DNA of 64,000 nucleotides from Takakia lepidozioides. Taxonomy: Eukaryota; Plantae; Bryophyta. The stretch covers positions 22,754,001 through 22,818,000 of the forward strand of contig CM060734.1 of assembly GCA_030704615.1 (NCBI GenBank). Reading direction: 5' to 3'. A program made the position numbers and the translations under genes. Below, piece by piece: positions 10,049 through 59,256 of this stretch. The notes beneath the pieces were generated by a model. That model was given only the letters and a program-made list of their open reading frames with translations, was not told where the DNA came from and ran no database searches. Positions within the stretch are counted from its first letter, which is position 1. The number at the start of each line of letters is the position of its first letter.

Positions 10049-11803
10049 CCGCGTGAGCCTGGCCGTGTGAGCGCAGCCAGGCTCACGCCATGTCAACAGT
10101 TCCCGCCACGTTGGTTCTTGCCAGCGTAGTTCACGCCACGTCATTCTCATAGGCACGGACCTATAACCGTGGATAGAACAGCGTGAAGGGGCCCTATAGC
10201 GCGGACTTGAGCGTTCGGCACATAGGGAACCATATTTGGGCGATGAGAAGAAGTGCAGAAAAGGTTCAAATGAATGTTGCTAAATGATTGTGTTTGAGAC
10301 CGAATATAGAATAATGGTTGTGGATGAATTAATGAGTATGAAGGAGAATCAGTGTGGATGACACGCACAGAATATGGATGAATATGGATGAAATCTTGAG
10401 GATGATAATGGCTGAATGGTGGACGACAAATTGAGGATAAGAAGGAGTGCGCACCTTTTTTTCACCATGGTTCATAAATAAAAGAATATAATACCCAACC
10501 CTTCTTCCAATAGCAACCGAACCCCACTGCCTTCCTTCCACACCGAAGCCGAGATCTCACCGAGCCCAGTGCAATGAGAAGACATTGCCACTAAAGATCC
10601 ATGTAATTGAGTAATGCTTACATTGAGTAAAAAGGGAAGGATGTACTATCATGACACAACATGGTCTGGCTGTTTTCCGGAATCAGCCTCTCCCATCTAG
10701 GTGTCATTCAAACATTTATTTGACCAAGCACAACGATCAATGTCGTTTGCACAAACATCACAATTTGGGAAAAATCCCTCATGAAGCACATGATAAGATT
10801 TAATCAATGTCTGCCATTTGGGAAAGGTAGACTGATCAAAGCAATCGTAGAAGAAGACAACACAACAGATGTCAGACAGATCTTTGACTCTTTGATTTGC
10901 TCGCACTGGTTACTGCAACATTCCCCCTGGCTGGTTGGAAAACAGTGTGCGGTGCCACACACCCCTTCTGCCCATTAGAAAAACACTGAATTCGGGACCC
11001 AAAAACAGTGTGCGGCGCCGCACACTGTTTTGGGTTCTAACCAACCAGGAAAAAAATAAAAATAAAAATAAAAATAAAATAAATCCCCCCCTCTGGTTGG
11101 CTGGAAAAACAGTATGCGGCGCCACACACCCTTTCTGCCCAGTGAAAAACACCGAATTCGGGACCCCCAAAACAGTTTGCGGCGCCGCACACCCTTTCTG
11201 CCCATTGAAAAACACCGAATTCGGTCTTTTTCAATGGGCAGAAAAGGTGTGCGGCGCCGCACGCTGTTTTGGGGTCCAACCAAGCAGAAGGGAAAAAAAT
11301 AAAATAAATTTCCCCTTAGGAGCCTTTTGGGTGGGGCAGAAACTGCTATGTATTCAATCCCTTTCAAGTACCCTCCATGCTTTCTGTTGCTGTCTGAAGA
11401 GACCTCAAAAAAAGCCTTTTGGATGGGGCACACACGGTGTGCTTTGAAGCACACTATTTCTGCTATGTTTTCAATCCCTTTCAAGGAGACGCGTCGCGGT
11501 GGATTCCTGCTTTAAGAAGGTGGATTCTTGCTTGAAGACATCGAATGGATGCAAATGGATGCGAATGGTTTGTCATTTCATTTCTAGTTTGTCATTTGTG
11601 GTTTTCTAGTTTCATGTTTTGATGAACAAATCCCACGGGTATAGGCCCCTCGGTCATAGGCGCCATATCTTTCTGGTGACGTGGCGATGGTTGTCCTATC
11701 GTCACGTCAGCATACCCACACCACGTCGGCGTGACCGTACGCTCACGCCACATCAGCTGGTGTGAGCGTAGGCTCACGCCATGTCAGCATTGTGTGAGCT
11801 TAC
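10049..11803. mobile_element. Non-autonomous element with long imperfect TIRs of the same family as the MULE end at 48150
   Basis: 10049-10175 resembles 48150-48315 directly. 11630-11803 (continuing at 21296-21304 beyond the Ty3 insertion) is an inverted copy built of GTGAGCGTACGCTCAC palindromes. Confidence 0.7.
10930..11285. repeat. Cluster of GTGCGGCGCCGCAC palindromic repeats
   Basis: About five AAACAGTGTGCGGCGCCGCACAC units in direct and inverted arrangement. Confidence 0.85.
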
Positions 11804-11968
11804 TGTCGTGCGCATACATATCGCTACACAACTACATCGCTGTCCAAAACCACACAACACATGTGCACACCACACACTAGTATACCACTAGTCCAACCAC
11901 TAGGCTACAACTAGTCAGTCACTAGGCTGCCACTATGTTGCCCACTATGGCAGTCACTAGTCCACACA
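11804..11968 (-). repeat. Terminal repeat A, copy 1 (165 bp, TG...CA)
   Basis: Near-identical to 12289-12476 (one substitution and one 23-bp repeat indel seen). Confidence 0.95.
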
Positions 11969-11969
11969 A

Positions 11970-12286
11970 TGATAAAGAAGAAGAATACAAGCACAAGCTC
12001 ACAAAGCTGAAGCATAAACTCATGCATATATAACCTCATCACTCAAATACAAGTCAAGCCAAGTGCACCCCACGCCATGGGGAATCCACACTACGGCGCC
12101 ATAGCTAGGCGCGGTGAGGCTCAACTCGAGAAAGATGAGCCTCCCGCGCTTGCCGTGAAGATAACCACTCCAGGGCCTAAATCTGCCTTGACCCCTGGAT
12201 TGACACTTGGGCCAATCCCAAATGTCAATATGTAAAAGCTAGCTATTTCCTAGCTAGTTTCACACTAGTGATAAAATAACTTGACA
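11970..12286 (-). repeat. Terminal repeat B, copy 1 (317 bp, TG...CA)
   Basis: Near-identical to 20965-21291 (one 10-bp indel and one substitution seen). Confidence 0.95.
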
Positions 12287-12288
12287 GC

Positions 12289-12476
12289 TGTCGTGCGCAT
12301 ACATATCGCTACACAACTACATCGCTGTCCAAAACCACACAACATATGTGCACACCACACACTAGTATACCACTAGTCCACCACTAGTCCAACCACTAGT
12401 CCAACCACTAGGCTACAACTAGTCAGTCACTAGGCTGCCACTATGTTGCCCACTATGGCAGTCACTAGTCCACACA
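12289..12476 (-). repeat. Terminal repeat A, copy 2 (188 bp), immediately after the PPT in sense orientation
   Basis: Joined to B1 by a CA-gc-TG junction. Confidence 0.95.
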
Positions 12477-12487
12477 ATCGCCCCCTA
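12477..12487 (-). other. Polypurine tract
   Basis: Sense AGGGGGCG-AT-TGTGTGG: purine run 2 nt before the TG of repeat A2. Confidence 0.75.
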
Positions 12488-12707
12488 GCTGGTGCTTAGG
12501 TCCCTCTAAGTCCAGGTAGCCACAAGATGTGATAGTGACCATAGTCTCACTAAGTCCTCCACCACTATCCCTACTACACTCAAACTCGATAGATCAAGAG
12601 GCCGGGTGCAAGAGTTGCCCCATCGTTAGTCGCCGTCTTGCAACCTGTGAACTTGAGCTTGGGATCTCATGTATTGACTCCTATGAGCTTGGCCTCCCAT
12701 GTCTTGT

Positions 12708-12830
12708 TAGCTGCCTCCGTCAGGAACCTTCTCAAGAGGTGGTGTCAAGCATCCCATATGCCAACCCCTTGAGCATCGATCACACACCAGCATGGTAGCT
12801 GCCCCTTTGGCAGATCCACAGAGCATCACC
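12708..12830 (-). pseudogene. PHD finger at integrase C-terminus (frameshift at first Cys, last CxxC missing)
   Basis: Manual translation: (C)MLCGSAKGAATMLVCDRCSRGWHMGCLTPPLEKVPDG. Confidence 0.85.
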
Positions 12831-14030
12831 TCAAACCTGCAGGTACCACTGCCAAGTTTGGGTCAACTCTGCCATCGACATTGGGAAGGTGACATGGCGC
12901 ACAATTACGCACATGGTCCTTCCAAGTCATGCCATCCCGACCCTCCAAGATCAGGACCCATGAGGGCAACACCTATCGAACCCTCAGAATAACACGCCCT
13001 GCAGTAACATCCAGAGTCGTAGGAGCAGTCTGCTGCAAATAAACATAGTCACCAGGGCTAAACCTCCGAACCCCAGGACGATATCCTCCACGACGTATAG
13101 TGGCATACCTCAACGTATCACGGTGCTGTGCAATGGCAAGGTTCTCAAAAGCCATGGGCATGACTTTCTTGAACAATTCTGCACGCTGATCACATGCACG
13201 TACCCACACGTCCGGATCGTCAAGGTTAAGGACTTGAGCAGTGTCCCTACGAATGGCTGCAGGCAAATCCAAAGAGAAGGAAATATGGTGTGAAGGAGGC
13301 AAGTGATGCTTGTTTGCTGAACCTGTAGCCCATGGCTAACCAAGGAACCTGAAGATCCCAATCTCCTAGGTGTCTCTTCTGCAAGCCATACTTGCGCAAA
13401 CCCCTCTTCACCGTCTGAACAACTCTCTTTGCCAAGCCATCGGCCTCAGGATGATCCCGAGAAGTGGTGCGGTGGTCTATCAAGGCTTTATCACACAAAG
13501 CCTGAAACTCCCCCAAGAACTCTCTCCCTTGGTCCGTGAGTACCTCAGCTGGAGCACCAAATTGGCTAAGCACACGATCCAAGAATGCATACGCAGCCCC
13601 CTCACTAGCCTTGTTAGGCAATGGAACCAACTCAATCCACTTGGAAAAGTGCTCCACCATCACCAACACATATCTGTGGTGGCGCATAGTCAGTGGCAAC
13701 GGTCCTGCGAAGTCAAGACTCCACCTGTAGCCCAATCCCATGATTGGTAAAGGATGCAACTGTGGTATAGGGGCGTTGAATGAAGCACGCACCCTGTCAC
13801 ACACCATGCACCTAGCCACGAACTGTTGCACCTCTGTATGCATACCACGCCACCAATACTGCCCCTGCAGTAAACTGTGAGTGTGTCGCACTCCAAAATG
13901 CCCCAACTCCTCATGGGCATGCCGCACTAACCGTGCACGCTGTGTGGGGTGAGGCACAATCCTCACCCAACCATCCTCCCACACTTGAAATAGGTGTATC
14001 CCCTCCCACTTAAACCTCTTGGCTCGTTAT
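12831..14030 (-). pseudogene. Retroviral-type DDE integrase
   Basis: HHCC finger (AHEELGHFG..CMVC), WSLDFAGP, VLTDQGREF, HPEADGLAKR (catalytic E mutated to K). Frameshifts and a stop downstream. Confidence 0.95.
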
Positions 14031-14405
14031 AGGATCTGATCCATCTCCCTGGCAGTCACAGTGGCTGTCGTGTCTCCCGTGTGGAGGTAGTCCAACACAG
14101 CCGAATCCTCATGTATATCTCTGGCACCACCTGGCTCATCACTAGCCTCAGGGTCCTCAGACACTCCGTCTACAGTCATCCATGTTGTAGGTCCAACCTG
14201 ACCTCCCGATGCCAAGATACACAAAAATGCAGATGCGTGCCATCCCGACATCATCTCCTCGTCCGTCTCACCATGCCACTGAGCTCCAGTGTCAACTTGC
14301 TGGCTCGTGCATGGATTGCGACTCAATCCATCCGCATCCCTATTGACCAAACCCGGTCGATGCACAACCTGAACATGTCTCTCATGCTCCTCCACCGTAG
14401 CACGA
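14027..14405 (-). pseudogene. Fused remnants of RT and RNase H after large internal deletions
   Basis: ATVEEHERHVQ (segment that follows YxDD in Ty3 RTs) is joined directly to VVHRPGLVNRDADGLSRNP (RNase H C-terminus). No YxDD is present. Confidence 0.8.
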
Positions 14406-14869
14406 GAGGCAAAGCAATTCCTGCAAGCCTCAGGAACCGCCGTATATGTCGTCTCTCTCCTCTAGTGACAATAGGTCCAATATCAGGCTCTCAATTGTCC
14501 TCCGTAACTGCAACCTTAAGTCCAGCAGACTTAGAGGTAGAGGACGCGTCCCGTGGTTGCTATGCTGCAACCTCTTGAGCAGTACTCTCTGCCTGCTCAG
14601 TCAATGACAAGACCTCATCCTGCCCCATCATCTCATCATTGAGGACCTCCTCAACCCGAGAAGAATCCCCAACCTCATCTATCACAGCCGCCTTGGCTGC
14701 CAACTCCCTCTGAACCTCGAGCACCTCCCACGTGTGCCATGGATGACTACGCCCTGTGGTCCTCACCGGCTCACCCCCACTCACTGCCTGTACCGTCTCG
14801 GTAGGCAGAGAGACCATTGAGGGAAGTGTACTCCGCACTCTGCGTTGCTCAGCCATAGACAAGCTGATA

Positions 14870-15795
14870 ATCCAGGTCAAGCAATTGAGATCTATTGCTT
14901 GCCCCAACACTTGACGATGTGATGCCTCAGAAAGAGACGACACCGCCGTGGTACCAGTGGTAAAACCCATTGCCCGCTCACGCTCGTCAGCATTAGGCTC
15001 CACTAACTGCTGCAACTGAGCATCCCACAGGAGGCCAGGTCCACTATCTCGGAAAGCATGCGATCCTGGGAAGCTGAGCAGTGTAGGTAATGCTGCTCGT
15101 GGTTGACCCACCTTGTTGACCACTGCCAAAGGCGAACGGTCATCGTGTCTCACACGCTGAGACTGCCTCCCTGTGTCCAGAATGCTATCCACTGTGAGAT
15201 GTGCTGGCCGCTGCACCCCATCAAATGCACGCTTGAGCAGTGCGGGTGGCATCAAGTTAGTCCACCATAGCCGTGGACGATGAGCCCGTGACCCCACTGT
15301 AGTTGCATCTAGCAACACTGCTGACCCAAGCCATGACCGAACTTGATGCACAGTGGCCATCACCCTGGCCCGAGAATCGCCCATCAGTGGCACATTCTCC
15401 AAGATGTATGCTGGAGATACAGCTTGATGAAGCTGCAAGTGGCGCAAAACCCGCACCATCTCCCAAAACAGACCCGACCTCGAGTCTCGCAATCCATTGC
15501 CATGCCCGGCTGATGAATGCCCTTGGCAGGGCCAACCTGCCACTACCATATCAATGGAGCCAACCCGCTCCAAATCTTGCGCCCCCAGCAACGAAATGTC
15601 TGCTGACGAATTGCAGACACCGACAACAACTCAGGGTACCGCTGCACCAACTGAGCAACATGGCGAAGTGAAATGCGTCGTGTAGTCTCATCCCTCTCCA
15701 CATATAGGTAACGCCAAACTCGTACACTTGCCTGTAACACAGCAGCCAATCCGGTGCTGATCCCGCCAAACAAGTCCAGAAGACAAATGCCTTCA
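14870..15795 (-). pseudogene. DNMT3-like C5 cytosine DNA methyltransferase domain within pol (one frameshift near 15600)
   Basis: Motif I LDLFGGISTG, II YVERD, IV AGWPCQGHS, VI ILENV, VIII AHRPRLWWTNL, IX ERERAMGF, X RQVLGQAID, all in canonical order. Confidence 0.93.
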
Positions 15796-16184
15796 TCCGG
15801 ATACTGCCACACAATAGGTGTGGTGTCCAATGGAGACAACTGAGGTGGTCCTGGTGCAATCCCCGCACTCTCCTCCTCTCTTGACGGTACAAAAGCCTCC
15901 ACCCAGGCTTGTTGCACCCGTCGATCAGCATCCCGCTGCAAATCCTTGCTCGTGCCCCACAATGGAGTCTGAGCAACCATGGTAGGCAACTCCGCCATAC
16001 CATACATGTCATCCTGCTCTCCTGGAGGTGGCACATCCTCTGAATGAGCGTTGCCCTCAAGCAACTCTCTAGGCCAACTCACTGCCGCTGTGAATGCTAC
16101 TAGTGTCGGCATCTTGCCTCGCTGGGCAACCGCAACTCCTCCTATGAACGTCACAGGGAGCTGCACATGCCGGCCCTCCCCTGA

Positions 16185-16560
16185 CTACCATGCAGGCCTA
16201 TAGGAAGCTGACTCCTCCCAAAAATCCAGGGTGAAGCCCATGGGGTACAACACTGCCCCACCAACCAGGACATCGTATGAGACCGCGTCTGTCACAATGG
16301 CCTTGGCTCGCATCACTGAGCCATCTGTAGGGTGATCGGGCCGTAGTCTGATAGCCAACTCACGCCGTGTCATGCCCCGAGCCTGCTCCGATCCTCCCAG
16401 AGACGTCTGTATCTGGAAATGTCAAGGCTCCATATCCGCCTCCGTGAGGCCCAAGCCTGCAATAGCAGCTCTGCCCAGCATCAATGGCTGAGCTCCCGAG
16501 TCCAACAAGACCCGCAGTGGCCGGTACCTCTTGCCTGCCGGTCCACTCAAACAGAAAATG
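16185..16560 (-). pseudogene. Retrotransposon aspartic protease
   Basis: VLLDSGAQ active site and YDVLVG C-terminal motif; in-frame stop at 16422. Confidence 0.85.
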
Positions 16561-17346
16561 CCATCCTGGTTGTATAACATGACAACTCCAGGTGTCACCA
16601 TGGCGCGCTCAATGGCTGGCCTAGCTGGCAGCTCCATCAACCTGGCAGCTGCAGCTTGCCATGGCGCCGCCGTGGCAGTCTTGACCCTCAAATCCGAGGA
16701 TCCCTCCGGCACTACACCTCCCAGTATCTCCGCAGAAGATGAAGTAACCTCCCCACTCTCACAGAGTGTAGCTGCCAGCCTGAACACCTCAGCTGGTCTT
16801 ACCCCCGGCGTCGCAATCATGGTAGCCGAGAACAATGGAGCCTGGCACACAGATGTGGCCGCTCCTAGCAGCACACTAGCTGTCGTAGCCTTGGCAATAC
16901 TAGGTAGTGGTACTACCCGTGTAGCTCTCCCCAATGGCATAGTAACCTCCGCCTCGGTAACAGTCGGGCGAGAACTAGGTGCCATGGATGGCGTCGACAC
17001 TGTCTCCGCCAATGTGAATGACTAAGGAAGCCTAGCCTGATGGCTTGCTTCCCCACGCTGTGGATCCAACTCCACCTCTGCACCTCGTGGCTCAGGAACT
17101 CGTGCTGCTCCTCGAGTCACGGCTGCAGCAGACTCCACCTACACTAGTGGTAGTGCTGCTCCACACATGAATCCCATGCCTCCCATATCTCCTCCCTAGG
17201 AGCAGGAGGTGGACCATCCGGCCTTAGAGCCGGTACCACCTGAGCTATAGCCATGGCAGCGAGCCTCTGCTCTAGCTGCTGAAGCCGGTTGGCCAGCCTT
17301 GGTCAACCCCCTGACCACCGCGTCCTTGGCCATGTTGAGCTTGCCC

Positions 17347-18705
17347 TTAGCCTACACCTCGTCCTCTCTGGGCTGCTCCACCTCGCCCCCAGCCACCATT
17401 GTTCCCTTGGAACTGGCCTGGGCACAACTCAGGATGCAAACCATAACACTGGGCCTCTCGATGCCCGTGTTTGCCACAATACCCACACTGCAACTGTGCA
17501 GGCTGTGCATGTGCCGGCCCTTTGCCTCCCTCTGGGCAATCCTTCTTGACATGGGGTCCTCCACATGTCCAGCACACCACATCCGCCCGTTGTTGCCCAG
17601 CAAATGAAGGGAGAGACCCCTGCATCTAAGGTCCTCTCTGCCCTTCCCTGAGCTTCACCTGAGCCCCCTTGTTGCCTTGAGCACATTGAGGTAGTGGGTG
17701 GCTAGGAGCACCACTACCCCGTGGTGTCTCCTTAGCAAATCCCACCATGACCACTCGTTCCTCCACCATGTTGAGCTCTATCCGCTCTACCAGCAAAAAC
17801 ACATTTGCTAAGGTGGGTTGGGCCGCTTGTAGGAGAGTTGCATCCCGCACCCTTCTCCTCAGCTCCTTGTCCAATATCCCATTCCAGAATTGGACTGCCT
17901 GAGCTTCCGTAACCCCTTGGGTTACATTTATCAAGCGCCTCATGCGAGTGAAAGCCTCCCTCAAGCTCTCGGTCGGCTTTCGTTGGAACTCTTGCAAGCT
18001 CCGCAACTTCTTTGTCCTCACCCCTTGGTAGTTCCCTCTCAACTCTTCGAAGAACTCCACAACATGGTTGAAGGCAGGCACGGGTGCTAGTGCTGGTGCG
18101 GTAGTGGCTTGGGTGGACGTCGTAGCTACTGTACCACCAGTCCCACCAGTCCCACTGCTACTTGCTGAAGCTGCCGGTGCAGCGGCAGGTGTAGCCACTG
18201 CCCTCGTGGCTCTAGTGCCCCTAGTGATGGAGACATAGTCGGGTGACCAGTACATCCTCCACTCCTCGATCTCAACCTCATGCCCCCGCCTGAACTCATG
18301 GTAATCATCCATAGGCGGCCCCTCAAGGTGCTGAAACAGCCCCTTCCATGTCATGAAAGGCGTAAATAGTTGTGGATTGCGCATTTGCTGCAAATCACAC
18401 CAACTATCAAACTCTTGGATAAAATCATCCAACTCGATGGTGCCCACCGCCCCAGAGTACCTTTGTGGCCCCTTGGTAGCTCCATACATCTCCTCCATTG
18501 TGTCCCACAACAATGACAAAGAAACAACTTGCACCGCCGGTATGAGTCCTCCTGATTCACAATCCGAATCAGAACCTTCCATAGAAGACACAGGAGGTGA
18601 AGGTGGCCTAAACCGCACACCTCGTCTCGTGTACCCACTAGTATCGCTAGTGCTCAAACTGGCACTGTCCCCAGCAACTAGTGGCACCTCCGTGTTGACA
18701 CTCAA
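17347..18705 (-). pseudogene. Gag with two CCHC-type zinc knuckles
   Basis: LQEFQRKPTESLREAFTRMRRL..F..G capsid-like segment; CWTCGGPHVKKDC and CGYCGKHGHREAQC. Confidence 0.85.
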
Positions 18706-19399
18706 CCGGTCATGAACATGTCCCTAACCCCCTCTCCACAAGGTAACCGGGTAGAGAACCTGTTGCGGCTTAGGGTTTGGAATACTAAGTTCCTAACATA
18801 GCCTACACCTGTACCTGCATCCACCGCAAGCACTCCTATGGTTGGCTGGTCATCACCTCCAACCTCACCACATGAGAAACAATGATGGTCTGGCTGGTCA
18901 TCACCCCAGCCTCACCATCGACAGCATGCTCTAGGACTGGCCGGTGATCAAATCCGGACCAATCACCTATAAAAACAAGCGCCCACACAAAACTAGCATG
19001 GCGCACAGTCAAGCATGCAGGTATGGAGGGGATCCAAACACAAGAAATCAGAACGACAACTCCCCCACACCAAAAACAACTCCACGGTGTTGCTCCTGCA
19101 AGGACACCCCAGCCCAAACCCGGACTGACTCTTGCCTCCACCTACGGAAAGGTCTTGGCCTAATGAGAGGGTGGAAACTACGAGGAAGAGAAGCTAAAGC
19201 AATGCCTAACCCCAGCATGCCCTCATCCCAACACTCTTCCTCTCTTCTCTTCCCTCACTTGCATGACCATGGGAATATCATGAAGATACTCCTCAAACCG
19301 CCCTCCACGAGCTTCAAAATTCGGCCTTCAAGACCACATACCAGTCCTTAGGCAGTCCACCAGTGCCTCCACAAGTCAGCACAGGCCGTCCACAGGTCA

Positions 19400-20640
19400 A
19401 CACGGGCCACCACAGACCAACACAAGCCCACACAGCTCACAGGCCACAGCCTGTCACAGCCTTACACAGGTCACAGGGTCACAGCCTGTCACACCCCATC
19501 ACAACCTCAAAGGCCACAGGCACAGCCTGTCACAGCCCTACAAAGGTCACAGGGTCACAGCCGCAAAGGCCACAGCCTATGACAGCCCCTCACAGCCCCA
19601 TAGGCCACAGGGCACAGCCTGTCACAGCCCGACACGGGTCACAGGGGTCACAGCCCCAAAGGCCACAGCCCCTCACAGCCCCTCACAGCCCCACATGCCA
19701 CTGGGCACAGCCTGTCACAGCCCGCCACAGCCTGTCACAGCCCCTCACAGCCCGTCACAGCTCGCCACAGCCACACAGCCCGTCACAGCCCCACAGGGCA
19801 CAGGACACAGCCTGTCACAGCCCGCCACAGCCCCACAGGCCACAGGGCACAGCCTGTCACAGCCCCTTATAGCCCATCACAGCTCGCCACAGCCTGTCAC
19901 AGCCTGTCACAGCCTGTCACATCCCATCACAGCCCCACAGGCCACAGGGCACAGCCTGTCACAGCCCGTCACAGCCCCACAGGCCACAGGCCACAGCCTG
20001 TCACAGCCCGCCACAGCCCATCACAGCCCATCACAGCCTGTCATAGCTTGCCACAGCCTGTCACAGCCCGTCACAGCCCCACAGGCCACAGGGCACAGCC
20101 TGTCACAGCCCCGCACAGCCTGTCACAGCCCCTCACAGCCCGTCACAGCTCGCCACAGCCCCACAGGGCACAGGGCACAGCCTGTCACAGCCCCTCACAG
20201 CCCGTCACAGCCCCACAGGCGAGTGGGCACAGCCTGTCACAGCCCGCCACACAGCCTGTCATAGCCCCTCACAGCCCGTCACAGCTCCAAAAGGCCACCG
20301 GCACAGCCCGTCATAGCCCATCACAGCCCCCAAGGCCACCGGCGCAGCCCGTCACAGGCCCTCACAGCCCGTCACAGCCCCGAAGGCCACCGGCACAGGC
20401 CCTCACATGCCCTCACAGCCCGTCATAGCCCCGAAGGCCACCGGCGCAGCCCGGCACAGCCCCTCGCAGCCCGACACAGCCCGTCATAGCCCTGAAGGCC
20501 ACCGGCGCAGCCCGGCACAGCCCCTCACAGCCCATCACAGCCCCCAAGGCCACCGGCGCAGCCCGTCACAGGCCCTCACAGCCCGTCACAGCCCCGAAGG
20601 CCACCAGCGCAGCCCGGCACAGCCCCTCGCAGCTCCACAT
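19400..20640. repeat. ~1.2-kb CACAGCC/GTCACAGCC low-complexity array in the retroelement 5' leader
   Basis: Dense reiteration of cacagcc(t/c)gt and cacaggccacaggg units. Confidence 0.95.
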
Positions 20641-20952
20641 TGCTGCAGCTCCTTAACTTGGCCTGCAGCTGAAGAAGACGACCACCAGTTCACCCACTCG
20701 AGACCAGCATCTCCCCCGCTTCACACTAGAAGCCCAAACTTGGTTGCCATAGCGTTGAGCTATGCAACGCCGCTCTTCAACATAGGCTACCCGCCTCTCT
20801 ATCCATTGCAAACCTGCAACCTGTTCGTCTTTGCACTCTATCCACTTTGGATAGGCTCATGCACGGATCCCTGCACTCTAGGCTGAACCGCTTCTCATGA
20901 AAACACAAGTGCTACAAAGCAACTCGAACCTGGCACTCACAGACTCGAGCTG

Positions 20953-20964
20953 ATCTTTCTCGAG
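20953..20964 (-). other. Putative self-priming primer-binding site
   Basis: Sense CTCGAGAAAGAT directly after the CA of B2 is complementary to 21130-21141 within B. No TGG tRNA-type PBS. Confidence 0.65.
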
Positions 20965-21291
20965 TGATAAAGAAGAAGAATACAAGCACAAGCTCATGCG
21001 AGCTCACAAAGCTGAAGCATAAACTCATGCATATATAACCTCATCACTCAAATACAAGTCAAGCCAAGTGCACCCCACGCCATGGGGAATCCACACTACG
21101 GCGCCATAGCTAGGCGCGGTGAGGCTCAACTCGAGAAAGATGAGCCTCCCGCGCTTGCCGTGAAGATAACCACTCCAGGGCCTAAATCTGCCTTGACCCC
21201 TGGATTGACACTTGGGCCAATCCCAAATGTCAATATGTAAAAGCTAGCTATTTCCTAGCTAGTTTCACACTAGTGGTAAAATAACTTGACA
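20965..21291 (-). repeat. Terminal repeat B, copy 2 (327 bp; 5' end of element)
   Basis: TG...CA; direct repeat of 11970-12286; followed by TTAC TSD. Confidence 0.95.
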
Positions 21292-21304
21292 TTACGCTCA
21301 CGCC

Positions 21305-22093
21305 GTTTTCCTCATATGGCACAACGCAGTTTCGAGCCCGGTGGCTGGGCTTGCCGCATCTATTGCAGCAAGATGTGGATTTCTTGATGTGAAAGTTTCC
21401 GTGATTGGCCCCTCCTTCCTTTTGATGAAATTTCTTGAACTTCACCCAAAGTGTCTCATCCTCGTCACTGGTCTTCTTGCTCTTGAGCTCTCGTTGGGAT
21501 TCTTCATACAACAGCATCCCAGAAAGTTCTTCGAAATCCGGCAATTTTTCTTTGTAAGCAATCATGATTGATTGAGTGTAATGCTCGTATGAATCTGGAA
21601 GGGCATTCAGTACCATCTCTGAAAGAACATCATTCTCTATGGTTTCTCCAAAACAAGCAAGTTGATTCACCAAGTCAGTGACTGTGCCTAGAAAAGATTC
21701 CATGGAAGTGTCATCATCTTTTTTGAGAAGAGATAATTTCTTTATGATGTTGAGCCTTCTAGAGTTAGATTTGACCTCAAACACCTTTGCTAGATGATCC
21801 CATAGCTCCTCGGGGTCAGTTATACGACTCACTGAGGGGATAAGTCTGTCCTAGAGAGTGTCCCGAATAAATGACAAGGCTTTCCTCTGTTGTTTCTCAA
21901 ACAATTCTTCATTGTCCTCAGTTACTTCAAACTTGGAATCAAGAACATGAGAAATGACATCTCTCATCAGAAGATTCTTAACCTTGAAACTCCATACAAC
22001 ATAGTTAGATCTACCAACTAGCTTGTTTTGTTGAGAGAATCCTAATCCCATATTATCCCCGTTAGTAGTCATCGTGATTAAGAAGAAGAACAA
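21305..22093 (-). pseudogene. Ty1/copia gag (UBN2-like) with zinc knuckle, truncated
   Basis: KLVGRSNYVVWSFKVKNLL..ELWDHL..LNALPDSYE..CNRCGKPSHRARNC; one stop at 21851. Confidence 0.9.
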
Positions 22094-31231: not shown

Positions 31232-32170
31232 CCTTGGTTATTCCATGTGGCATGGTCGTTGGTTGGACCCCTACCTTGAGTGCCTTGCGAATGGTTTGTC
31301 GCGCACGGTGACTCTTGTCCTTGAGGTTCTTACCCACCAGCTCCAAGAGCTTCCCCTCATTCCACTCACCCGGAAATTGGCCCTCAAGTGCTTGCATGAA
31401 TGCTCGCCTATGGCAATCAACATGCCAAGGGAACCACCTCGCCGCCAAGTCGAAGGCCTGTTTTTTCATGGCCTCCCAATACTCACCAATGGGGTCACCA
31501 ACCTTATTGGTCTCTAAGGGGGGCACCACCATCTTTGGCAAATCAGGGACGCGGGGACTCGAGGTCTTTACCTCGTCCACGCTCTTCTGAACTACCTCTC
31601 CCTTGTCTTTTGTTGCCCCACTAGTGCCCTCCCCCGGCTGCACCTCTCTCCTTCTACGCCTCTTTCTCTTGGGCTCCCTCTCGTGGGCCCGTCCCTTCCC
31701 CGTCCCCTCCACTACTTCCCTCCCTTCCTCCACTACTTGCCTACCCTCCTTGATGACTAGGAACACAAAACCCACAAAATTAGAAACAAACCAGAAACAA
31801 AATGAAAAACAAAGGAACAAAAACAAGGTGAAGGAAAATGGCTCACCTTTGCGTCCATGAGCTCAATGTTGCCCTCGGTCCCCGCTTGTGGTGCAACCCC
31901 CATAAGGCCCTCTCGGAATAAGGGTGGAAGCCTGTCCCATGCACTCAATAGGCTTGCAAGCGGCGCCCCAAAGTCCAGGGTCTTCTTCATTGACCGTTCG
32001 GGCGACGGACTTCGCAAGGGGCCCTCCAAAGCCAGTGTCTCCCTCTCCTCTTCCCCTTCCCTTTTCCGTGCCCCCCATTTCCCTCTTCCCTCTTCTTGTC
32101 TTCCTCCCTCGTCCTTTCCTCCTCCTTCCACCTCATTGCGGCCTCCTTTGAAGCCTCCCTCTTCTCCCAA
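31232..32170 (-). pseudogene. Spliced fragment resembling a plant CACTA TnpA/Transposase_24-type accessory protein
   Basis: Charged N-terminus, apparent intron ~31757-31847, and LEGQFPGEWNE..LKDKSHRARQTIRK..PHGITK. Family assignment is by resemblance only. Confidence 0.4.
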
Positions 32171-32208
32171 GGTGAGGAGGAACCCCCCCCCCCCCCCCCC
32201 CTCCCCCC

Positions 32209-32990
32209 TTATGAGCTGATAGCCTCTTTGTCGGTGATCTTCGACCTGCTCTTCTTTGGGATTCTAACTTGGGACTTGATAAGGACGTTGTCAATTCGGA
32301 TGCCCAAGTTCATGATTCGTGTGCGCGTGTCCTCGGTAGCAAGATTAATAAAGCCGAAGGACAATTCGGGGTTGGGTTTGTAGACGTGCAGGATTTCAAA
32401 GTTATCGCTCGGGTCATAAGTCTCTGTCATAAAATGCATGGCAAGCTGAGTGCCCACCATGCCCTGCAGGATCTCGCACTCAGAGGGAGGAATGCCCAAA
32501 AGTAGCAGTTGCTCCATGGTATGCATACATCTCCATGTTCTGGTATCCATACCAGAGATGGTGGGCTGTTTTGTTGCTGTTGACTTCCAGGGGTTGCCGC
32601 TCGGAAGTCCCTGTGAGATGATTACGTGACTTTTTCGAGTCCGAAGGGGCTGGAGCAGCTGCACTGGTGACCTCGCTCAAGGACCTTTTGGGACACTGGC
32701 TTGAGGAAGTAGAGATCCCCATAGGCCTGTTGCTGGGAGGGGCCAATGGGACCGGTCCATGGTATCAGGCATTTGGGCGTCATGTGGTGGCTGAATGGCT
32801 GATTTGGTGTTGGACGTTGGGGGTGGCCCAGGAGGTACGTTGCGAGCTGTCGGGGCAGGGGTGTGCTTATCAGCAGCCAGCATGGGTACCGTCGAGGATG
32901 GCGTGATGAGCTTTCGTTGAATAATTTCTTCGTGGAGGCCATGTTTTTGGGTCTAGATTTGGGGGACGTAGATAGAATTGGCGGGGAGGA
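32209..32990 (-). pseudogene. LINE ORF1-like protein start (low-complexity N-terminus plus RRM-like segment), truncated
   Basis: SFGFINLATEDTRTRIMNLGIRIDNVLI resembles the RNP1-helix-strand of non-LTR ORF1p. Multiple frameshifts. Confidence 0.4.
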
Positions 32991-34522
32991 CATATGTGCA
33001 GGGAGAGAGGAGGCAGGGAGGGGAGCAGCTGCTGCGTGGGTACTACGGATACTAGAGACGAGAAACCAGAGAGGTGGAGAGAGAGAAGCAAGGGGAGGTG
33101 GAGAAAGCTGATGAGTATGCAGTAGAGTCCGAGAGAACCAGCTGCGAATGTGACAATCAGGGGTGGATTCGACAGATGTATAGTGTGCTGCATGGGGGCA
33201 GGGTGGCGGAGGTGTTTGCATGTAGTAATTAATTGCAGGCGGCTTGGGGCAGACATGAGCGTTCAATTCAGGGGTTGCGGAGATGGTTTGTAAGTAATGT
33301 TTGGCTGCATACTTATTAAGTGCTAGAGGGGTAGTGTAGCATCCAGGATTTTGGGTAATGTGGATGGAGGTGAATAAATTGGAAGAGATGAGGGCACCAG
33401 TGTAGTATTGGTCATGATAGTGGGGGGTATTAATGAGATGGTGGCTCATCCATTGATAGCAAGTGTGGGAGGGGACACAGGTAGAGTTTGTCTTGTCATT
33501 GTTAATGGAGCCAGAGGAAGGGAGACGGCTGTCTGATAAATGGCTGGTGGAACTTCTGTACTGATGGAAGATATTGATAAGGTTATGAGTGGTGTTTGTC
33601 AAGGGACTTGTGGAATTTGGGTGTAGAGTGAGTAAAGTGAGGATGGTGGGAGAAGGAGTTAGAGGGGGGTAGATGCGAGGAAGCGCGATGATTGGTGGGC
33701 GATTTGGGACATAGCAGGGGAGGGGGGACGTTGGATGATGAGTCAGCTTGGAGTGAAGGATATGCTGCGGGGGGTGGATATATAGTGGGTGTAAGCTTAA
33801 TGGTCCCTATGGACAGGAGGGTGTGTGGTTTAATGGGGAAGCAGTTGTGTTGAAAATAAGACCTGCTTGTGGTATGACGCAAGTGTGGAGAGTGGCTGAG
33901 GTAAAGGACACGGGGAATTGTAATCATTGGGTAAGGGAGGGGGTTGAGCGGTAAATCAAGGTGGTGGTAGCGGGCCAAGAGTATAGGGGTAGTGGTGTTA
34001 ATGGTATGCAATGTTTGTGTTTGTGTTTTGGAGTACTGTGAGTAATAAGAGAAGTGTGGGTATAGTATGGTCTGGTAACCATTGAGAGTATTGTATCCAT
34101 GAGAAAAGTAGGGGTTGGAGCAGGCAGCCGCCCTTCCAACAGTCAATTTAACAAGATTTACGGATTGTAAAAAAATAGAGACTGTGCTAACTGATGAATT
34201 GGGTCTTTGTATAAGGGTCTGCTGCAGCAAAGCACAGATGGGGGATGGAAATGATAGAGGAGAAGAGGAGGTGTTGCGCTGGATATTCTTTTAGTACACG
34301 AAGAGCTTTAGCGAGAGCTGGGTATTGGCAACTAGGTAGACCAAAGGTGGCGATTGGCTGTGTAGGTGTATGACTAGCAAGTAATGAGTTGGGGAGGAGG
34401 GGAGAGAAGTGATCATAGAGATGTTGATATGCCGGCATAAGTGAGACAGTGTTCTGTTGAAAGTATAACGCGTACCTCTCCTGTGGGTCAGTGGGGAGTT
34501 CACCAATGATATCGTTAGTGAC

Positions 34523-34582
34523 GGGGCCTGGGTTTGGATGGATGTCGCCACATCGCATTAGTATAAGTGTTGCGCATGCAAG
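34523..34582 (-). other. 2A-like (stop-go) peptide motif
   Basis: LACATLILMRCGDIHPNPGP within ORF 34187-35365. Confidence 0.65.
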
Positions 34583-37500
34583 CTTAAATTGATTATGGGG
34601 TGACGGAGGGTGGGGTACAGAGTGTTTAGATGCGGGGGGGTATTTGATGGTACCGACCATGCGGGCAGTGGGTAATAAGATAGGTGTTGGGAGATCGATA
34701 GACATGTGTAAATGAGGGATGGGTGATGGGGGGATGCGGGTGAGATATATTGTGAGGGGTATTTTTGTGTGTAATAGTAGAGCTGGTCGTAGATGCATGT
34801 GAGGGGGGGTCAATTGTTGGGTAGTTTGTGTGTGACAAGCGGTTTTTTTAGGGCTTATGTTATGAGGATGGCAAAGGTGTATTATGGGTCGTGGGTAAAT
34901 GATGGTTGTAATATTTAATGTGGCGGGTGTAAGATAAGTGGGCGAGGGACCTGGGTGGATGCCATCGAGTAGGGGCATGGATGAGAAGGCATGTGGGTGG
35001 GTAACGTTGCGGTGGTATGTGGCGGGGTGATGAGTGTGGTGTAAAATTGTTTTGAATGAGAACAGAGAGTAAAGATCATGGTGTAAAATTGTTTGGAAAG
35101 GGTATGGATAGCAGTATAGTGAGGTAGCCTTTTTCCGAGGTAACATTTGCCTGAGGTAGTATTTTCCCGAGGTAACATTAGCGAGGTGCCATATGTGAAA
35201 TGATGTAATATGGAGTGCCTTAACCACAATCTTGGAAAGTACTGTGTAATGGGGTGGGCATGGGTATATTGTGGGTGTGGGGAGTAAAGTATTGGACGGG
35301 GCGAAAATTTGGTGGGTGGGCGGATGGAAGTAGCTGCGGGGAGATTCAGATGGGGGTATTTGCAAATGATAAGTCGATGGGGAGGGGTTAGTAGGCTGAG
35401 AGTGGAATTGTGACGTAGGGTAGGTAGCCGTAGATAAACAATATGTAGCGGGGAGGTGGGTGCGCTGGAGTCCCTCGTGGTGGATGATAGAATATGGATG
35501 AAAGTGGAGATGAGATGGGTAGTGGTAGTTGGGTGTATATCAACGAATTATCAACGAATGTGTTTGGTGTAAGATTGTGTAGCAGTATCAGACATAGAGA
35601 GAGGGGGCACGCCAGTTTGAACAGGCGATGAATGTGTGCTGGTGTAACAGCATTTTGATAAGGTTGATAAGGTAGCGTGAGGAAGTGGGATGAGTCAGTA
35701 GTGTGAGAGAGTACGGTGAGAAAGTAATGTGAGGTAATGATGTGAGGTAATCCTGTGAGGATATTGTGGTAGTGTGAGTACATATTGTGAGGAAATCGTG
35801 TGAGTGTGGTGTGCTGGGTATAAGCCAGACTTTGATAGAACCCAGGTGGGTTTTTAAAAGTGTCATAGACAAAAATATGAAATGAATATCACAATCCAGA
35901 AGCATCATCTTGACTAAGCAAACGAGTTGTGCAACACTTGGTGGAGCATGAGTCTAGTGGCATAAAATGACCACATGAGGGCAGCAGATGGGCTGATAAT
36001 TCGGTTGTGGGGGCGCATAGTGGTACATTGGTGCATTCCTGGGGAGGATGGTGATGAGCGGCAGTTGAGCATGGGATCGCTAGCTGTACCTGTGTTGAGC
36101 CCAGGCTTGGTGTGGTAGCTTTCCAATCTGCAGGTGCAATGGGGACGCCAGAGTGAAGCATAACAGTTAAGGGCCCGCTTGGGTTTGAGTTCAGGAAGCC
36201 TGTGCAGTGGAACACTATCTCTGGAGCATAGCTAAGTATGCAAGTAGCGTACAGCCTAGAGGTATGGAAAGTAGGTGCGGAAACTGGGGGTACAAGAGCA
36301 GAGTGATGCAGGGGGAATACAGACATTGGGGGGTGGAGCTAGCAACAGGGCAGTCAACCTGAACAGAGGCTTGTGGCAGGCATCAAGATTAACAAGAAAG
36401 GTGGAGGGTTGGAGGGTAGCTTCCCTGGGGGACAGGATTTGGCATGTAGGTGGGGCAGTCTGAAGAAAGCAAACAGACGGGGGGGGCCGTGGGGAGTGTA
36501 CGAGGGGAGGCGGCGTCGCTGTTACATGAGTCCAGATCTGATGAGGGCAGCAGACCGTTGGTACGGGGTAGGGCCGAGTTGGGGGGTCGTCAGTTACATA
36601 GCAGGGGATGGCTGCACTCGTTTGTAGAGTGTCAACACCGCTGCCGGATATGGCAAACCATACAAAGGGATCATCTCTGTGCACATATTTGACATTGTCA
36701 GTCCAATTGTGTCGCCCCGTAAAGAAAACCAACCATGTGGACAGTCTGGTGTTAAAGAGGCTAAAGGTTTGCTTACTCTCAGGCGTGTGTTGAAAGATGA
36801 AAACTAGCGGGGTTGTAGCAGACCAGGGGATGTAAAGAGAAAGCCCAGAGCAGGATGCATGATGCAGCATTGAAGAAGGCAGGGGTGACATACCTGGCAG
36901 TAATTGAGCAAGGAGAAAGCCATTGAGTGAGTTGGGATCCAGCACCATGCCTGGTGACAGGGAGAGTCGTTGGGGTAACATGAGTAGAGTTGGTGTGGGA
37001 TTGGCAAGGCAGCTTCGAGCAAGCTGTGTACCATCAGGGCATGGAGCAAGACCTTGGCCTCCGACATTTCAGTTTGGAGATGAGCACATGACAGGGGTAC
37101 AGGAAAGGGCCTAGTGAACGCTTTAGTGCGAATACTTATAGCATCTCCACGGTGAGCACGGCACGTCAAACGCTATATGCCTTGTTTACAGGGCAAAATT
37201 GAGATGAATTGACGGGTATATTGCGAGTGAGGGGGGATAGCACCTGGGGGGAAACTTCCCTTGGTGCTTTGAATTGTTGAGCTGGTGTATGATAGGTTGT
37301 AAGCTTGCGAGTGTTGGTTGTCCGATCTGTCGTGCGCACAGACTCAAAAACGGACAGCCGTGCAGGAAACCTGAAATCCAGCTTAGCAAACATAGTACTA
37401 ATTCAATCAGATAATTCCACCCAGTCAGAGTATGTGCTATTAATGTAAGGGGGCCAATCTGTATCTGACATAGTGTAAGAGAGAGAGTCTAAAGCAACTG

Positions 37501-38728
37501 CAATAGGTTCTGCAGGGGGCATGTTATAAGAAAGAGGATCTGGAATAGCTACTGTAGATATAGGACTTACAGCACATCAACCACAGTGGCGAAAGGAAGG
37601 CACGCTGGATGGGATGGTACAGAGCATCGTGTTTGACAGGGGTGTCATAAAGATAGTTTTCAGGAAATTGTTGGCAAAAAGTACAGTGCATGGTAGGGTT
37701 TCCACAAAAGTAGCTGCATGCAAGACCTTATCTGCAAAGAGCATAATATATGAAGGGAGCGTCACGGAAATAGTTTTTAAGAACTTCGTTGCAGAGAGCA
37801 CGGTGTTTGACACAGTTTGTGAGAGATTGTCTGTAGTTAGCATAGCATGTGGTGGAGATTTCATGTGAGTAGTAGTCATAACATTAACTTCGACAACATG
37901 CATGATGGAGGTTCCACATTAACAAAGGTTTTCAATGAAGTATTTGTAATGGGCACATTGACTAATATGGATTTCATCGGAGAAGTTCCCAAGAAATGAT
38001 CAGTAGAGGCAAGAGAGAATGACATATGCTGGTTGAGTAGGGAGTTAGCAAGTTCAGCAATTTTATCAGAGAATTCAGCTTGAGGTGGAAGCTTGGTATG
38101 CCGGCTAAGAAGGCAATGTGATTTGAAGAGCATAGGTGCGGGGGAGTGAAGATTAAGGTACTTATCTTGTACATTGCAGGCCTGGACTGAGGTCATTGTG
38201 TTGAGAGCAGAGAGGCGAACCAACCGAGGTGCGAAGACACCACTGAGAGCATCGGTGAGAGAGATGCTAGAAGGCTGATGTTGTTACATGCCTTTGCTGG
38301 TCGAGAGGAGATTGAACCACCAGCAAGCTCCTGCCGGTACATCTGCATTCCCTTGGTGTTACTCCAGCAGCGACAAGGGCCCTTCATGCACATTTTCCAG
38401 TCCTTGGGAGTAAACATAACTGTTGCAAAGTACACGATTTGTGTAACTCTCTGTGTAGAATAGAGCTTTGGAACTGAGTAGCAAAAGTTTAGGGGAGTGT
38501 GTGTGGCATTGTAGAAAGGAGGTGGAAGGATACAGTAACCTGGCAGGGCAGCGAGTGATGGTTCCTCCTGGCAGGACCAACGCGCAATGCTGAACATCGA
38601 CCCGTGCCGTAGCACCCGATTCCTTCAGAGTGGGGAAACTGGGAGGTGAAGCCCACCTTGACGAGTTTGGTTCAAGGAAAGGAGTGTAGAGCATAGTGGA
38701 CTTCGAAACCCCAGGTTTCAAATACTGC

Positions 38729-56989: not shown

Positions 56990-59256
56990 TTAAATGGAGC
57001 GACCGCCAAGGTGGCGGTCGCTTCTACGAGGTCTGCCCTCCGCGTGGAGCAAGGAATGAGGGGGGGGATATAAACTCCCAGTCATTATTTTGAAATGAAG
57101 CGACCGCCGTTACTGGCGGTCGCTTTTCTGTTTTTTTGGAGCAAAATGGAGTGACCGCCATTAAGGGCGGTCGCCATTATTGTTGTTTTTTGTAATTGCA
57201 GCGACCACCATTAGTGGCGGTAGCTTTTATTGAAATTTCGTTGGAAATGGAGCGACCGCCAAGGTGGCGGTCGCTTCTACGAAGTGTGCCCTGCGCATGG
57301 AGCGAGGAGTGAGGCGGGGGGAGGGAGGCATATAAGCTCCGGGACATTCTCCCCTCACTTCCGGTCGCTTGAAGTTATTTTTTGTTTTTATAAATGCAGC
57401 GACCGCCATTACTGGCGGTCGTTTTTTTTGTTTTTAAATGGAGCGACCGCCATGGTGGCGGTCGCTTCTACGAGGTCTGCCCTGCGCGTGGAGCGAGGAA
57501 TGAGGCGGGGGGGAGCATATAAGCCCCCAGTCATTCTCCCCTCACTTCCATTACTGGCAGTTTTTGTTTTTACAAAATACAGCGACCGCCATTACTGGCG
57601 GTCGCTATAATGGTTATTTTTTAAGATGCAGCGGCCGCCATTACTGGCAGTCGCTTTTATTTTTTGAAATGGGGCGACCACCATTACTGGCGGTCGCTTT
57701 TATTTTAATTATTTTGGAAATGAAGCGACCGCCGTTACTGTCGATCGCTTTTTCGTTTCTTGGAAGAAAATGTTGTTTTTTGTAATTGCAACGACCGCCA
57801 TTACTGGCGGTCGCTTTTTTTTTAATTTGGTTGGAAATGGAGCGACCGCCATTTGTGGTGGTCGCATTTATTTTAATTGTTTTGAAAATGAAAATGAAGC
57901 GACCGCCATTACTGACGGTGGCTTTTATTTAAATGTTTTTGAAAATCAAGCGACGCCATGACTGGCGGTCGCTTTTATTTTAATTGTTTTGAAAATTGCT
58001 AGCGGTCGCTTTTATTTTAATTTTTTTGAAAATAAAGCGACCGCCTATGTTGACGGGCGCTTATTTATTTTAAATGTTTTGAAAAAGAAGCGACCGCCCA
58101 TGTTGGCGGTCGTTTATTTATTTTAAATGTTTTGAAAATGAAACGACCGCCTATGCTGACGGTCAATTATTTACTTTTAATGTTTTGAAAATGAAGCGAC
58201 CGCCTATGCTGGCGGTCGCTTATTTATTTTAAATGTTTTAAAAATGAATCGACCCCCTATGCTGGCGGTCGCTTATTTATTTTAAATGTTTTGAAAATGA
58301 AGCAACCGCCTATGCTGGCGGTCGTTTATTTATTTTAAATGTCTTCAAAATGAAGCGACCGCCAATGTTTGCGGACACTTATTTTTCTTTAAGTTTTTGA
58401 AAATGAAGTGACCGCCTATGTTGGCGGTCGCTTATTTTTTTTTAAGTTTTTAAAAATGAAGCGACCGCCTATGTTGGCGGTCGCTTATTTATTCTAAATG
58501 TTTTGAAAATGAAGCGACCGCCTATGCTAGCGGTCGCTTATTTATTTTAAATGTTTTCAAAATGAAGCGACCGCCAATGTTTGCGGACACTTATTTTTCT
58601 TTTAAGTTTTTAAAAATGAAGCGACCGCCTATGTTGGCGGTCGCTTGTTTATTCTAAATGTCTTGAAAATGAAGCAACCGCCTATGCTGGCGGTCGCTTA
58701 TTTATTTTAAATGTTTTCAAAATGAAGCGACCGCCAATGTTTGCGGACACTTATTTTTCTTTTAAGTTTTTGAAAATGAAGCGACCGCCTATGTTGGCGG
58801 TCGCTTATTTATTTTAAAGTTTTTGAAAATAAAGTGACCGCCCATGTTGGCGGATGTTTATTTATTTTAAATGTTTTGAAAATGAAGCGCCACTGCTTTT
58901 TTTTTTAAATTTAAAAAATGAAGCGACCGCCTATGTTGGCGGTCGCTTATTTTTTTTTAAGTTTTTGAAAACGAAGGGACCGCCTATGTTGGCGGTCGCT
59001 TGTTTATTTTAAAAATTTTGAAAATGAAGCGACCGCCTATGCTGGCGGTCGCTTATTTTTTTTTTAATTTTTAAAAAATGAAGCGACCACCTATGTTGGC
59101 GGTCGCTTATTTATTTTAAATGTTTTGAAAATCAAGCGACCGCCTATGCTGGCGGTCGCTTATTTTTTTTTTAATTTTCTTTAAATGAAGCGACCGCCTA
59201 TGTTCGTGGTCCCTTATTTTTTTTTAAGTTTTTGAAAATGAAGCGACCGCCTATGC
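56990..59256. repeat. ~53-bp hairpin minisatellite (AAGCGACCGCC-N6-GGCGGTCGCTT plus A/T tract), roughly 37 motif copies
   Basis: Regular ~53-bp period from ~58037; looser copies from ~57000. Confidence 0.95.

Follow-up and report, generated by a model that had tools for sequence, protein, structure and literature searches.

Retroviruses and long terminal repeat (LTR) retrotransposons are taught to integrate by the ends of their LTRs, and a route through circles carrying two LTRs, once proposed for retroviruses, is generally treated as a dead end. Split direct repeats are the order of the DIRS-type elements PAT, Ngaro and TOC1, which use a tyrosine recombinase and leave no target-site duplication (TSD). 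DIRS-like repeats have been described together with Gypsy domains in KnitGypsy-Dnmt3 of Klebsormidium nitens (de Mendoza et al. 2018, PMC5890265, Fig. 4c legend), where the arrangement is given in one figure legend, without TSDs, palindrome, primer or mechanism; we found no other description of a Gypsy element with split direct repeats in the literature. Here we analyse such an element in 64,000 nucleotides of Takakia lepidozioides (assembly GCA_030704615.1, contig CM060734.1, positions 22,754,001 to 22,818,000 of the forward strand; this whole stretch is called the window, and its coordinates are used below). A first-pass annotation of the window had been unaware of any description of this combination; the Klebsormidium legend already contains one. 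We conclude that the Gypsy-Dnmt3 kind with DIRS-like repeats has here a new member, defective and of bryophyte type, and that the integration route that its structure would imply is unusual for a DDE integrase. Specifically, we consider it probable, though well short of certain, that in this Ty3/gypsy-Dnmt3 lineage the ends of the complementary DNA (cDNA) are joined and the integrase opens a palindrome within the LTR.

The 9,488 bp at 11804-21291 form a single insertion whose sense strand is the minus strand. A repeat finder and direct reading gave the sense order B2-PBS-leader-gag-...-PPT-A2-GC-B1-A1 (PBS, primer-binding site; PPT, polypurine tract), with an internal region of about 8.5 kb between A2 and B2. 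No further copies of A or B were found in the 64-kb window (0 expected by chance). The borders are as follows.

11800-11803, unstranded: left TSD, TTAC, the same as 21292-21295.
11804-11969, minus strand: A1, the outer A copy, 166 nt; the insert terminates on the right with its sense 3' end, ...GCGCACGACA.
11970-12286, minus strand: B1, 317 nt, supplying B to the complete 3' LTR; in sense it runs into A1 without a gap.
12283-12292, unstranded: palindrome GACA-GC-TGTC at the A2/B1 junction, kept in liverwort and moss relatives.
12287-12288, plus-strand coordinates: GC spacer, 2 nt, between B1 and A2.
12289-12477, minus strand: A2, 189 nt, the U3-proximal part of the 3' LTR.
20965-21291, minus strand: B2, 327 nt; the insert begins on the left with its sense 5' end, TGTCAAG.
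21292-21295, unstranded: right TSD, TTAC.

A1 and A2 share 165 matches, with one mismatch and one 23-nt indel in a short tandem motif, and B1 and B2 share 316 matches, with one mismatch and one 10-nt indel. Read in sense, A is TTGTG...CGACA and B is TGTCA...TATCA, both bounded by TG...CA. The left end of the insert consists of B alone and the right end of A-GC-B-A; two matching terminal LTRs are present neither here nor in the relatives described below. The termini of the insert, TGTCA...CGACA, and the 4-bp TSD are as in Ty3/gypsy elements. Removal of the element and one TTAC leaves gtgagc-TTAC-gctcac, which matches the adjoining tandem unit gtgagc-NNNN-gctcac at 11740-11790. Because the flanks without the element restore the local repeat unit, the whole 9,488 bp must have entered as one piece. 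The repeat borders and the restored empty site thus bear out two proposals of the first-pass annotation, the B...A-B-A layout and integration as one molecule with a TTAC TSD.

Genomic loci were collected via relatives of the gag and Dnmt3-like (DNMT) proteins, and JGI metagenome contigs were scanned with a DNMT alignment, which contributed many moss-type copies. Ten related copies share the topology; they come from Calypogeia fissa, Sphagnum fallax and metagenome contigs of moss origin, and represent at least three species and independent assemblies. Two copies from C. fissa (L002 and L010) and one from Sphagnum fallax (L009) have exactly the order B-internal-A-xx-B-A, as do the complete metagenome copies L041, L046 and L049, and three further metagenome copies (L016, L021 and L048) run off their contig ends yet agree with it. 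Perfect 4-bp TSDs, all different, flank eight copies including the window copy (TTAC, AGGC, AGTA, AAGT, AAGG, TCTC, CACA and CAAG, the last belonging to the deletion derivative L014). All 17 independent 5' ends read flank-B-PBS, with A upstream of B in none; conventional matching LTRs, for which the relatives were searched, likewise appear at 0 of these 17 ends. Metagenome contigs L003-L007, which carry long polyproteins, end at the repeats and provided no termini, and the fragmentary or rearranged copies from Marchantia (L001 and L012) and Sphagnum tenellum (L013) were left out of the topology, L013 being counted for its 5' end only.

The window copy is degenerate and is the sole copy in the window, as might be expected of a one-off rearrangement, a nested insertion or an assembly artefact of a conventional LTR element. 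However, the empty site is exactly restored, and the 10 copies have the same order with differing flanks and TSDs across independent assemblies of at least three species, which refutes a one-off rearrangement of the window copy and leaves explanations of this type scarcely credible at all. We conclude that the layout, combined with a DDE integrase and 4-bp TSDs, is a lineage trait, as the first-pass annotation had suspected.

Some relatives have departed from this layout. In the moss-type copies L027 (5997-6235) and L029 (5987-6225), an inverted copy of the A region adjoins the PBS in place of B, and the repeat set of Marchantia L012 is similarly scrambled; all three are rearranged copies. As to insertion sites, the window copy (11700-11803, 21296-21310) lies inside a short tandem array whose unit, gtgagc-NNNN-gctcac, is itself an inverted repeat, and the young C. 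fissa copy L002 (8040-8111, 18025-18120) also lies inside a tandem array of inverted-repeat units, which contain aagcgc. The presence of such arrays at both young insertions may reflect a target preference for palindromic DNA.

L002, a relative with intact domains, has the order gag, protease-DNMT, reverse transcriptase (RT), RNase H, integrase and PHD, which is the Ty3/gypsy order with a methyltransferase inserted. The window copy has a protease-like region, an RNase H tail and an integrase, with the RT missing. It resembles KnitGypsy-Dnmt3 in its Ty3/gypsy-type domains, in the Dnmt3-like methyltransferase inside pol and in its green-lineage host, and the repeats of the Klebsormidium element, A-coding-B-A-B (X-coding-Y-X-Y), correspond to B2-coding-A2-B1-A1 of the window copy. 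It differs in its bryophyte host and in the lack of RT and most of RNase H, the two being compared by description only. No Klebsormidium proteins were returned in protein searches for relatives.

Like PAT, Ngaro and TOC1, the window family has split direct repeats, in the same order once the repeats are renamed; in both, the internal junction equals the joined outer ends and the element is a rotated two-repeat circle. Since this topology is formally identical to that of PAT and Ngaro, and the Klebsormidium arrangement was called DIRS-like by de Mendoza et al., replication could be imagined to proceed as in those elements, through circular or single-stranded cDNA closed by means of the internal junction as a splint, with insertion by site-specific recombination. 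We regard this as very improbable. No tyrosine recombinase was found: Pfam gave no Phage_integrase match in the window copy, and instead identified an rve DDE integrase with an H2C2 finger both there and in relatives. In addition, every complete copy has a 4-bp TSD and TG...CA termini, the signature of DDE enzymes, and the PPT and PBS lie exactly at LTR-type borders.

These borders can be placed from the following features.

12478-12486, minus strand: polypurine tract AGGGGGCGA (sense), directly upstream of A2.
12125-12136, minus strand: self-primer copy in B1, 12 nt, ATCTTTCTCGAG (sense), followed by a conserved TTGAGCC.
20953-20964, minus strand: PBS CTCGAGAAAGAT (sense), adjoining B2 and complementary to the self-primer within B.
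21130-21141, minus strand: self-primer in B2.

The PPT block CCAGNTAGGGGGGCGA is kept in relatives, where the conserved block directly before A2 ends in AGGGGG(G)CGA. A starts 3 nt past the conserved G-run in every copy, with the same start nucleotide in A2 and A1. At the other border, the 11-17 nt that follow B2 directly in seven elements can pair without mismatch with a segment of B about 150-220 nt from its start, and this segment is followed by a TTGAGCC-like box. The self-primer is ATCTTTCTCGAG in the window copy, AGTTCTCTAAG in L002, AGTTCTTCAAG in L010, AACATAGTTCTTTGAG in L009, CTCATTCTTTGAAG in L014, AGTTCTTCGAG in Marchantia L008 and AGCTTTGAAGA in Haematococcus L011, and each is paired by its own PBS. 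This covariation is the signature expected of Tf1-type self-priming. A tRNA-type PBS was rejected, as the sites differ among elements and co-vary with B. Self-priming has been reported for Tf1/sushi elements and predicted for moss elements of the Tcn1 clade (Neumann et al. 2019, PMC6317226). As in these elements, the PBS of the window family follows U5 directly and pairs with the start of R instead of a tRNA. They have ordinary matching LTRs and a chromodomain, in contrast to the PHD finger, methyltransferase and permuted repeats of the window family.

From the covariation of PBS and B, R should begin midway through B, and U5 ends where B ends. With a PPT before A and a self-primer PBS after B, reverse transcription should yield the LTR A-GC-B, and U3 should consist of A, GC and the first half of B. 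Consistent with these limits, B ends exactly at the B2/PBS border and A starts exactly at the A2/PPT border. An LTR made of B alone, or of B-A, was considered and rejected, given that no purine tract lies ahead of B1 and no primer site past A1. At the level of reverse transcription the element thus looks conventional, with a PPT and a self-primer, and the unusual step looks to be integration. The first-pass annotation had suggested an undescribed replication scheme, and we did not find the replication of such Gypsy elements worked out in the literature.

Two further features surround the primer. A hairpin GGCTCA...TTGAGCC around the self-primer is conserved (window 21120-21150 in B2 and 12115-12145 in B1; L002 8245-8285). 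Just upstream of the self-primer, elements of C. fissa, Sphagnum and Marchantia also have a near-copy of the PBS, which forms a stem with the primer.

The internal A2-GC-B1 junction consists of both insert termini head to head, forming the palindrome GACAGCTGTC, so that it is a copy of the joined outer ends, as had been proposed from the window copy. Nearly every copy has the insert termini TGTCA...CGACA; old copies, among them L041 and L057, carry point changes there. Liverwort and moss elements show strong conservation over the last 55 nt of A, and B diverges right after TGTCA. The ends predicted at the level of reverse transcription have no conserved TG/CA, the C. fissa B ending in TTTA.

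The two junctions of the 3' repeats vary in different ways. Across copies, the A2-GC-B1 junction has point changes only. The B1-A1 joint, where the end of U5 meets the start of U3, is exact in five copies and 1 nt off in two; L049 has 9 nt of PBS and 6 nt of filler there, and L041 lacks 1 nt and has 20 nt of filler ending in the PPT tail CGA. Such joint errors are typical of retroviral two-LTR-circle junctions. Errors of the kind found in L049 and L041 imply that the B-to-A joint is made anew in each cycle, and we predict that the palindromic A-GC-B junction, unlike this joint, is copied from the template. New here are A-GC-B as the predicted product of reverse transcription, the placement of the insert termini at an internal palindrome and the variable B-to-A joint.

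We propose the following cycle. As in Tf1, the minus strand would be self-primed, through pairing of the start of R, midway through B, with the site directly after B, and the plus strand would start at the polypurine tract directly ahead of A, giving a cDNA with an A-GC-B LTR at both ends. The integrase would bypass the cDNA ends, and the end of B and the start of A would be joined to each other. The joined molecule would then be opened at the palindrome ...CGACA-GC-TGTCA... of the upstream LTR by nicks after each CA of ACA-GC-TGT, leaving recessed CA-3'OH ends with 2-nt 5' overhangs. Recessed CA-3'OH ends are the normal substrate of strand transfer. Insertion with a 4-bp TSD would produce B-PBS-internal-PPT-A-GC-B-A. 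In our best model, the integrated copy would be a circular permutation of a two-LTR molecule that was opened at its upstream palindrome and runs through one full turn.

Cleavage of this type has precedents. The integrases of foamy virus and HIV-1 cleave a palindromic LTR-LTR junction (PMC1180852, PMC1905944, PMC4372172). In retroviral two-LTR-circle junction cleavage, and at the abutted-end circle junctions of insertion sequences of the IS3 and IS30 families, a DDE enzyme similarly cuts head-to-head inverted ends a few base pairs apart and frees ends competent for insertion. In retroviruses, however, it is the joined LTR ends that form the palindrome, and the pathway is marginal; the window family has its palindrome within U3, and its inserts carry along the joint of the cDNA ends.

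We infer that the joined form would be a covalently closed two-LTR circle, that the integrase itself would make the cuts and that joining would precede cutting, and the same applies to the identity of the joining enzyme and to the reason why only the upstream palindrome is used. On the last point, we speculate that the upstream LTR might become double-stranded earlier in reverse transcription, which could produce the upstream bias. In a stronger form of the proposal, which we hold only tentatively and with some doubt, end-joined cDNA of the two-LTR-circle type would be the obligatory substrate throughout the lineage, the DDE integrase would recognise a palindromic site in U3 and not the cDNA ends, and every provirus would be rotated and carry a fresh circle junction.

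Several points weigh against joining followed by opening at the palindrome. The proposed mechanism is read from genomic sequences, and the copy census is mostly one Sphagnum-type family. A symmetrical two-LTR circle would be expected to give the alternative opening B-A-GC-B-internal-A as well, which is found at 0 of 17 5' ends; this implies either a directional choice or an intermediate that is not a simple closed circle. Finally, some copies have a single A: Marchantia L008 is B-internal-A with a single A end and a near-perfect TSD, L026 ends in a single A with its 5' end off the contig, and the Haematococcus relative L011 is B-internal-A without repeats. These may have arisen by recombination or may indicate a different route; L008 and L026 could be products of one-LTR circles. 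Separately, a regular-expression search matched the palindrome upstream of B in L043, L045 and L058; these were rejected as chance matches in AT-rich flank.

The absence of the alternative opening bears on a different order of events, in which cutting comes first, joining later, and no closed circle forms. The integrase would act on the upstream-LTR palindrome of linear cDNA, the upstream LTR having become double-stranded first; the ends inserted would be the main body's B-start and, from the freed A fragment, its A-end, and host end joining, or an end-to-end template switch of the RT, would link the end of B to the start of A. The same product would result. This order would explain the variable B-to-A joint, supply a reason for the use of the upstream palindrome only and fit the absence of A upstream of B at all 17 5' ends, and the PBS remnant in L049 would fit a plus strand still bearing the PBS copy. 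It would, however, need repair of a chromosome break after every insertion or an unusual template switch, and we consider it unlikely, although it and the circle model would be indistinguishable by sequence.

The single-A copies suggest instead that the primary product could be B-internal-A, from a one-LTR circle that is cut or from linear cDNA cut at both internal sites, with the B-A tail added secondarily. Such copies do exist with TSDs, in Marchantia (L008) and Haematococcus (L011), and L026, whose 5' end is off the contig, has a single A too. Yet without a second B the transcript would lack terminal redundancy and thus could not be reverse-transcribed, and the youngest copies, the window copy and L002, with repeats 99-100% identical, are both full B...A-B-A. 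Recombination between A2 and A1 with loss of GC-B1 would account for the single-A copies L008 and L026. We therefore regard B-internal-A as an improbable primary product and retain the joining of cDNA ends and opening at the upstream palindrome as the preferred reading.

The coding content of the window copy was read by six-frame translation and Pfam, with broken frames searched piece by piece, and comprises the following features.

12710-12862, minus strand: PHD-finger-like C-terminal extension of the integrase, with a Cys/His pattern and 63% identity to the C. fissa PHD region (Pfam: PHD).
12976-14026, minus strand: integrase in two frames, with H2C2 zinc finger, rve DDE core and C-terminal part (PF17921 E=3.7e-16, PF00665 E=2.5e-14).
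14030-14461, minus strand: remnant of the RNase H C-terminus and linker.
14563-16184, minus strand: Dnmt3-like C5 cytosine DNA methyltransferase (PF00145 E=7.9e-13).
16188-17021, minus strand: protease-like region with an LLDSGA motif and in-frame stops, 54% identical to the C. fissa PR-DNMT open reading frame (ORF).
17350-18723, minus strand: gag with two CCHC zinc knuckles (weak Retrotrans_gag and zf-CCHC matches) and an in-frame stop at 17626-17628.
19430-20700, minus strand: degenerate 10-bp tandem repeats, about 1.3 kb (plus strand CACAGCCCGT), within the 5' leader between PBS and gag.

The best protein relatives come from liverworts and mosses. The window gag is 44-62% identical to bryophyte gag proteins, and the identities of gag and DNMT to Calypogeia fissa, Marchantia and Sphagnum proteins are 55-67%. 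Motif I of the methyltransferase lies in one frame, and motif IV (PCQ) and ENV in another; the closest solved structures to this domain are DNMT3A/3B. The protease-like region at 16188-17021 has no Pfam match. The leader has no DNA similarity across species. Pfam gave no Chromo match in the window copy, which has a PHD finger in place of a chromodomain.

No RT was identified in the window, either by six-frame reading or by tblastn across its whole length with the RT ORF of C. fissa, the source of the closest genomic relative. The RT and most of RNase H are gone between about 14383 and 14686, where the window copy has 0.3 kb against the about 1.5 kb that hold them in the C. fissa relative. The "gag/pol" of the first-pass annotation therefore stands for gag, a zinc knuckle, the protease-like region, the C5 methyltransferase, the RNase H tail, the integrase and the PHD finger, and fails for the reverse transcriptase. 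The coding frames contain about five in-frame stops and about five frame changes. Lacking RT and most of RNase H, the window copy is non-autonomous and cannot replicate alone. The approximately 99.6% identity of its repeats, despite the broken frames, suggests that it is a defective element mobilised in trans fairly recently.

A DNMT search revealed Gypsy polyproteins with a Dnmt3 domain in green algae and bryophytes, where they are widespread. Two domain orders occur, knuckle-DNMT-RT-RH-IN (P0061) versus RT-RH-DNMT-IN-PHD (P0069/P0077/P0084), where RH is RNase H and IN is integrase, suggesting two acquisitions or a domain move. The Haematococcus lacustris relative L011 (7141-17233, JASKMD010000015.1) is a 10.1-kb RT-RH-DNMT-IN-PHD element with termini TGTCAC...GTGTCA, the TSD TTAG, a self-primer/PBS pair and a G-run ahead of a 62-nt tail; blastn self-comparison detected no direct repeats in it. 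It is inserted in one LTR of a chromovirus, whose partner LTR (L011 1281-1294) has TTAG-TGTGTC-TTAG at the homologous spot. This looks like the TSD with 3 nt of each terminus of the inserted element, similar to an excision footprint, which is odd for a retroelement.

The sequences describe a family with an ordinary DDE integrase, PPT and PBS that would consistently integrate by sites inside the LTR, each copy bearing a place where cDNA ends were joined. Circular cDNA would be productive and not a by-product if the joined form is a true intermediate; should it be the obligatory substrate of the whole lineage, DDE and tyrosine-recombinase retroelements would have converged, and a presumed dead-end pathway would be in normal use. 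The family could be a natural system for integrase action on palindromic junctions. This structure would also explain why annotation pipelines that look for two matching LTRs miss or mis-split such bryophyte and algal elements. The Dnmt3-like enzyme bears on how retroelements handle host methylation.

Elsewhere in the window, direct and inverted repeats built on AAAACAGTGTGCGGCGCCGCACAC occupy 10939-11307, including a 55-nt perfect-spacing hairpin at 11165-11274; this cluster looks like small foldback elements, or elements of the miniature inverted-repeat transposable element type, just upstream of the insertion. The region 32000-38000 has a strong GC skew, up to +0.54, and long minus-strand ORFs of 326, 392 and 241 aa without a Pfam match. 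At 58002-59255 there is a 53-bp satellite of about 17-24 copies, each with the inverted pair GCGACCGC...GCGGTCGC, followed by an array of 120-bp repeats to about 60570. Of the ORFs at 48778-49554 and 62337-63584, one encodes a SWIM zinc finger and another has a weak protein-kinase match; the SWIM-finger ORF is possibly the remnant of a MULE/FAR1-type transposase.

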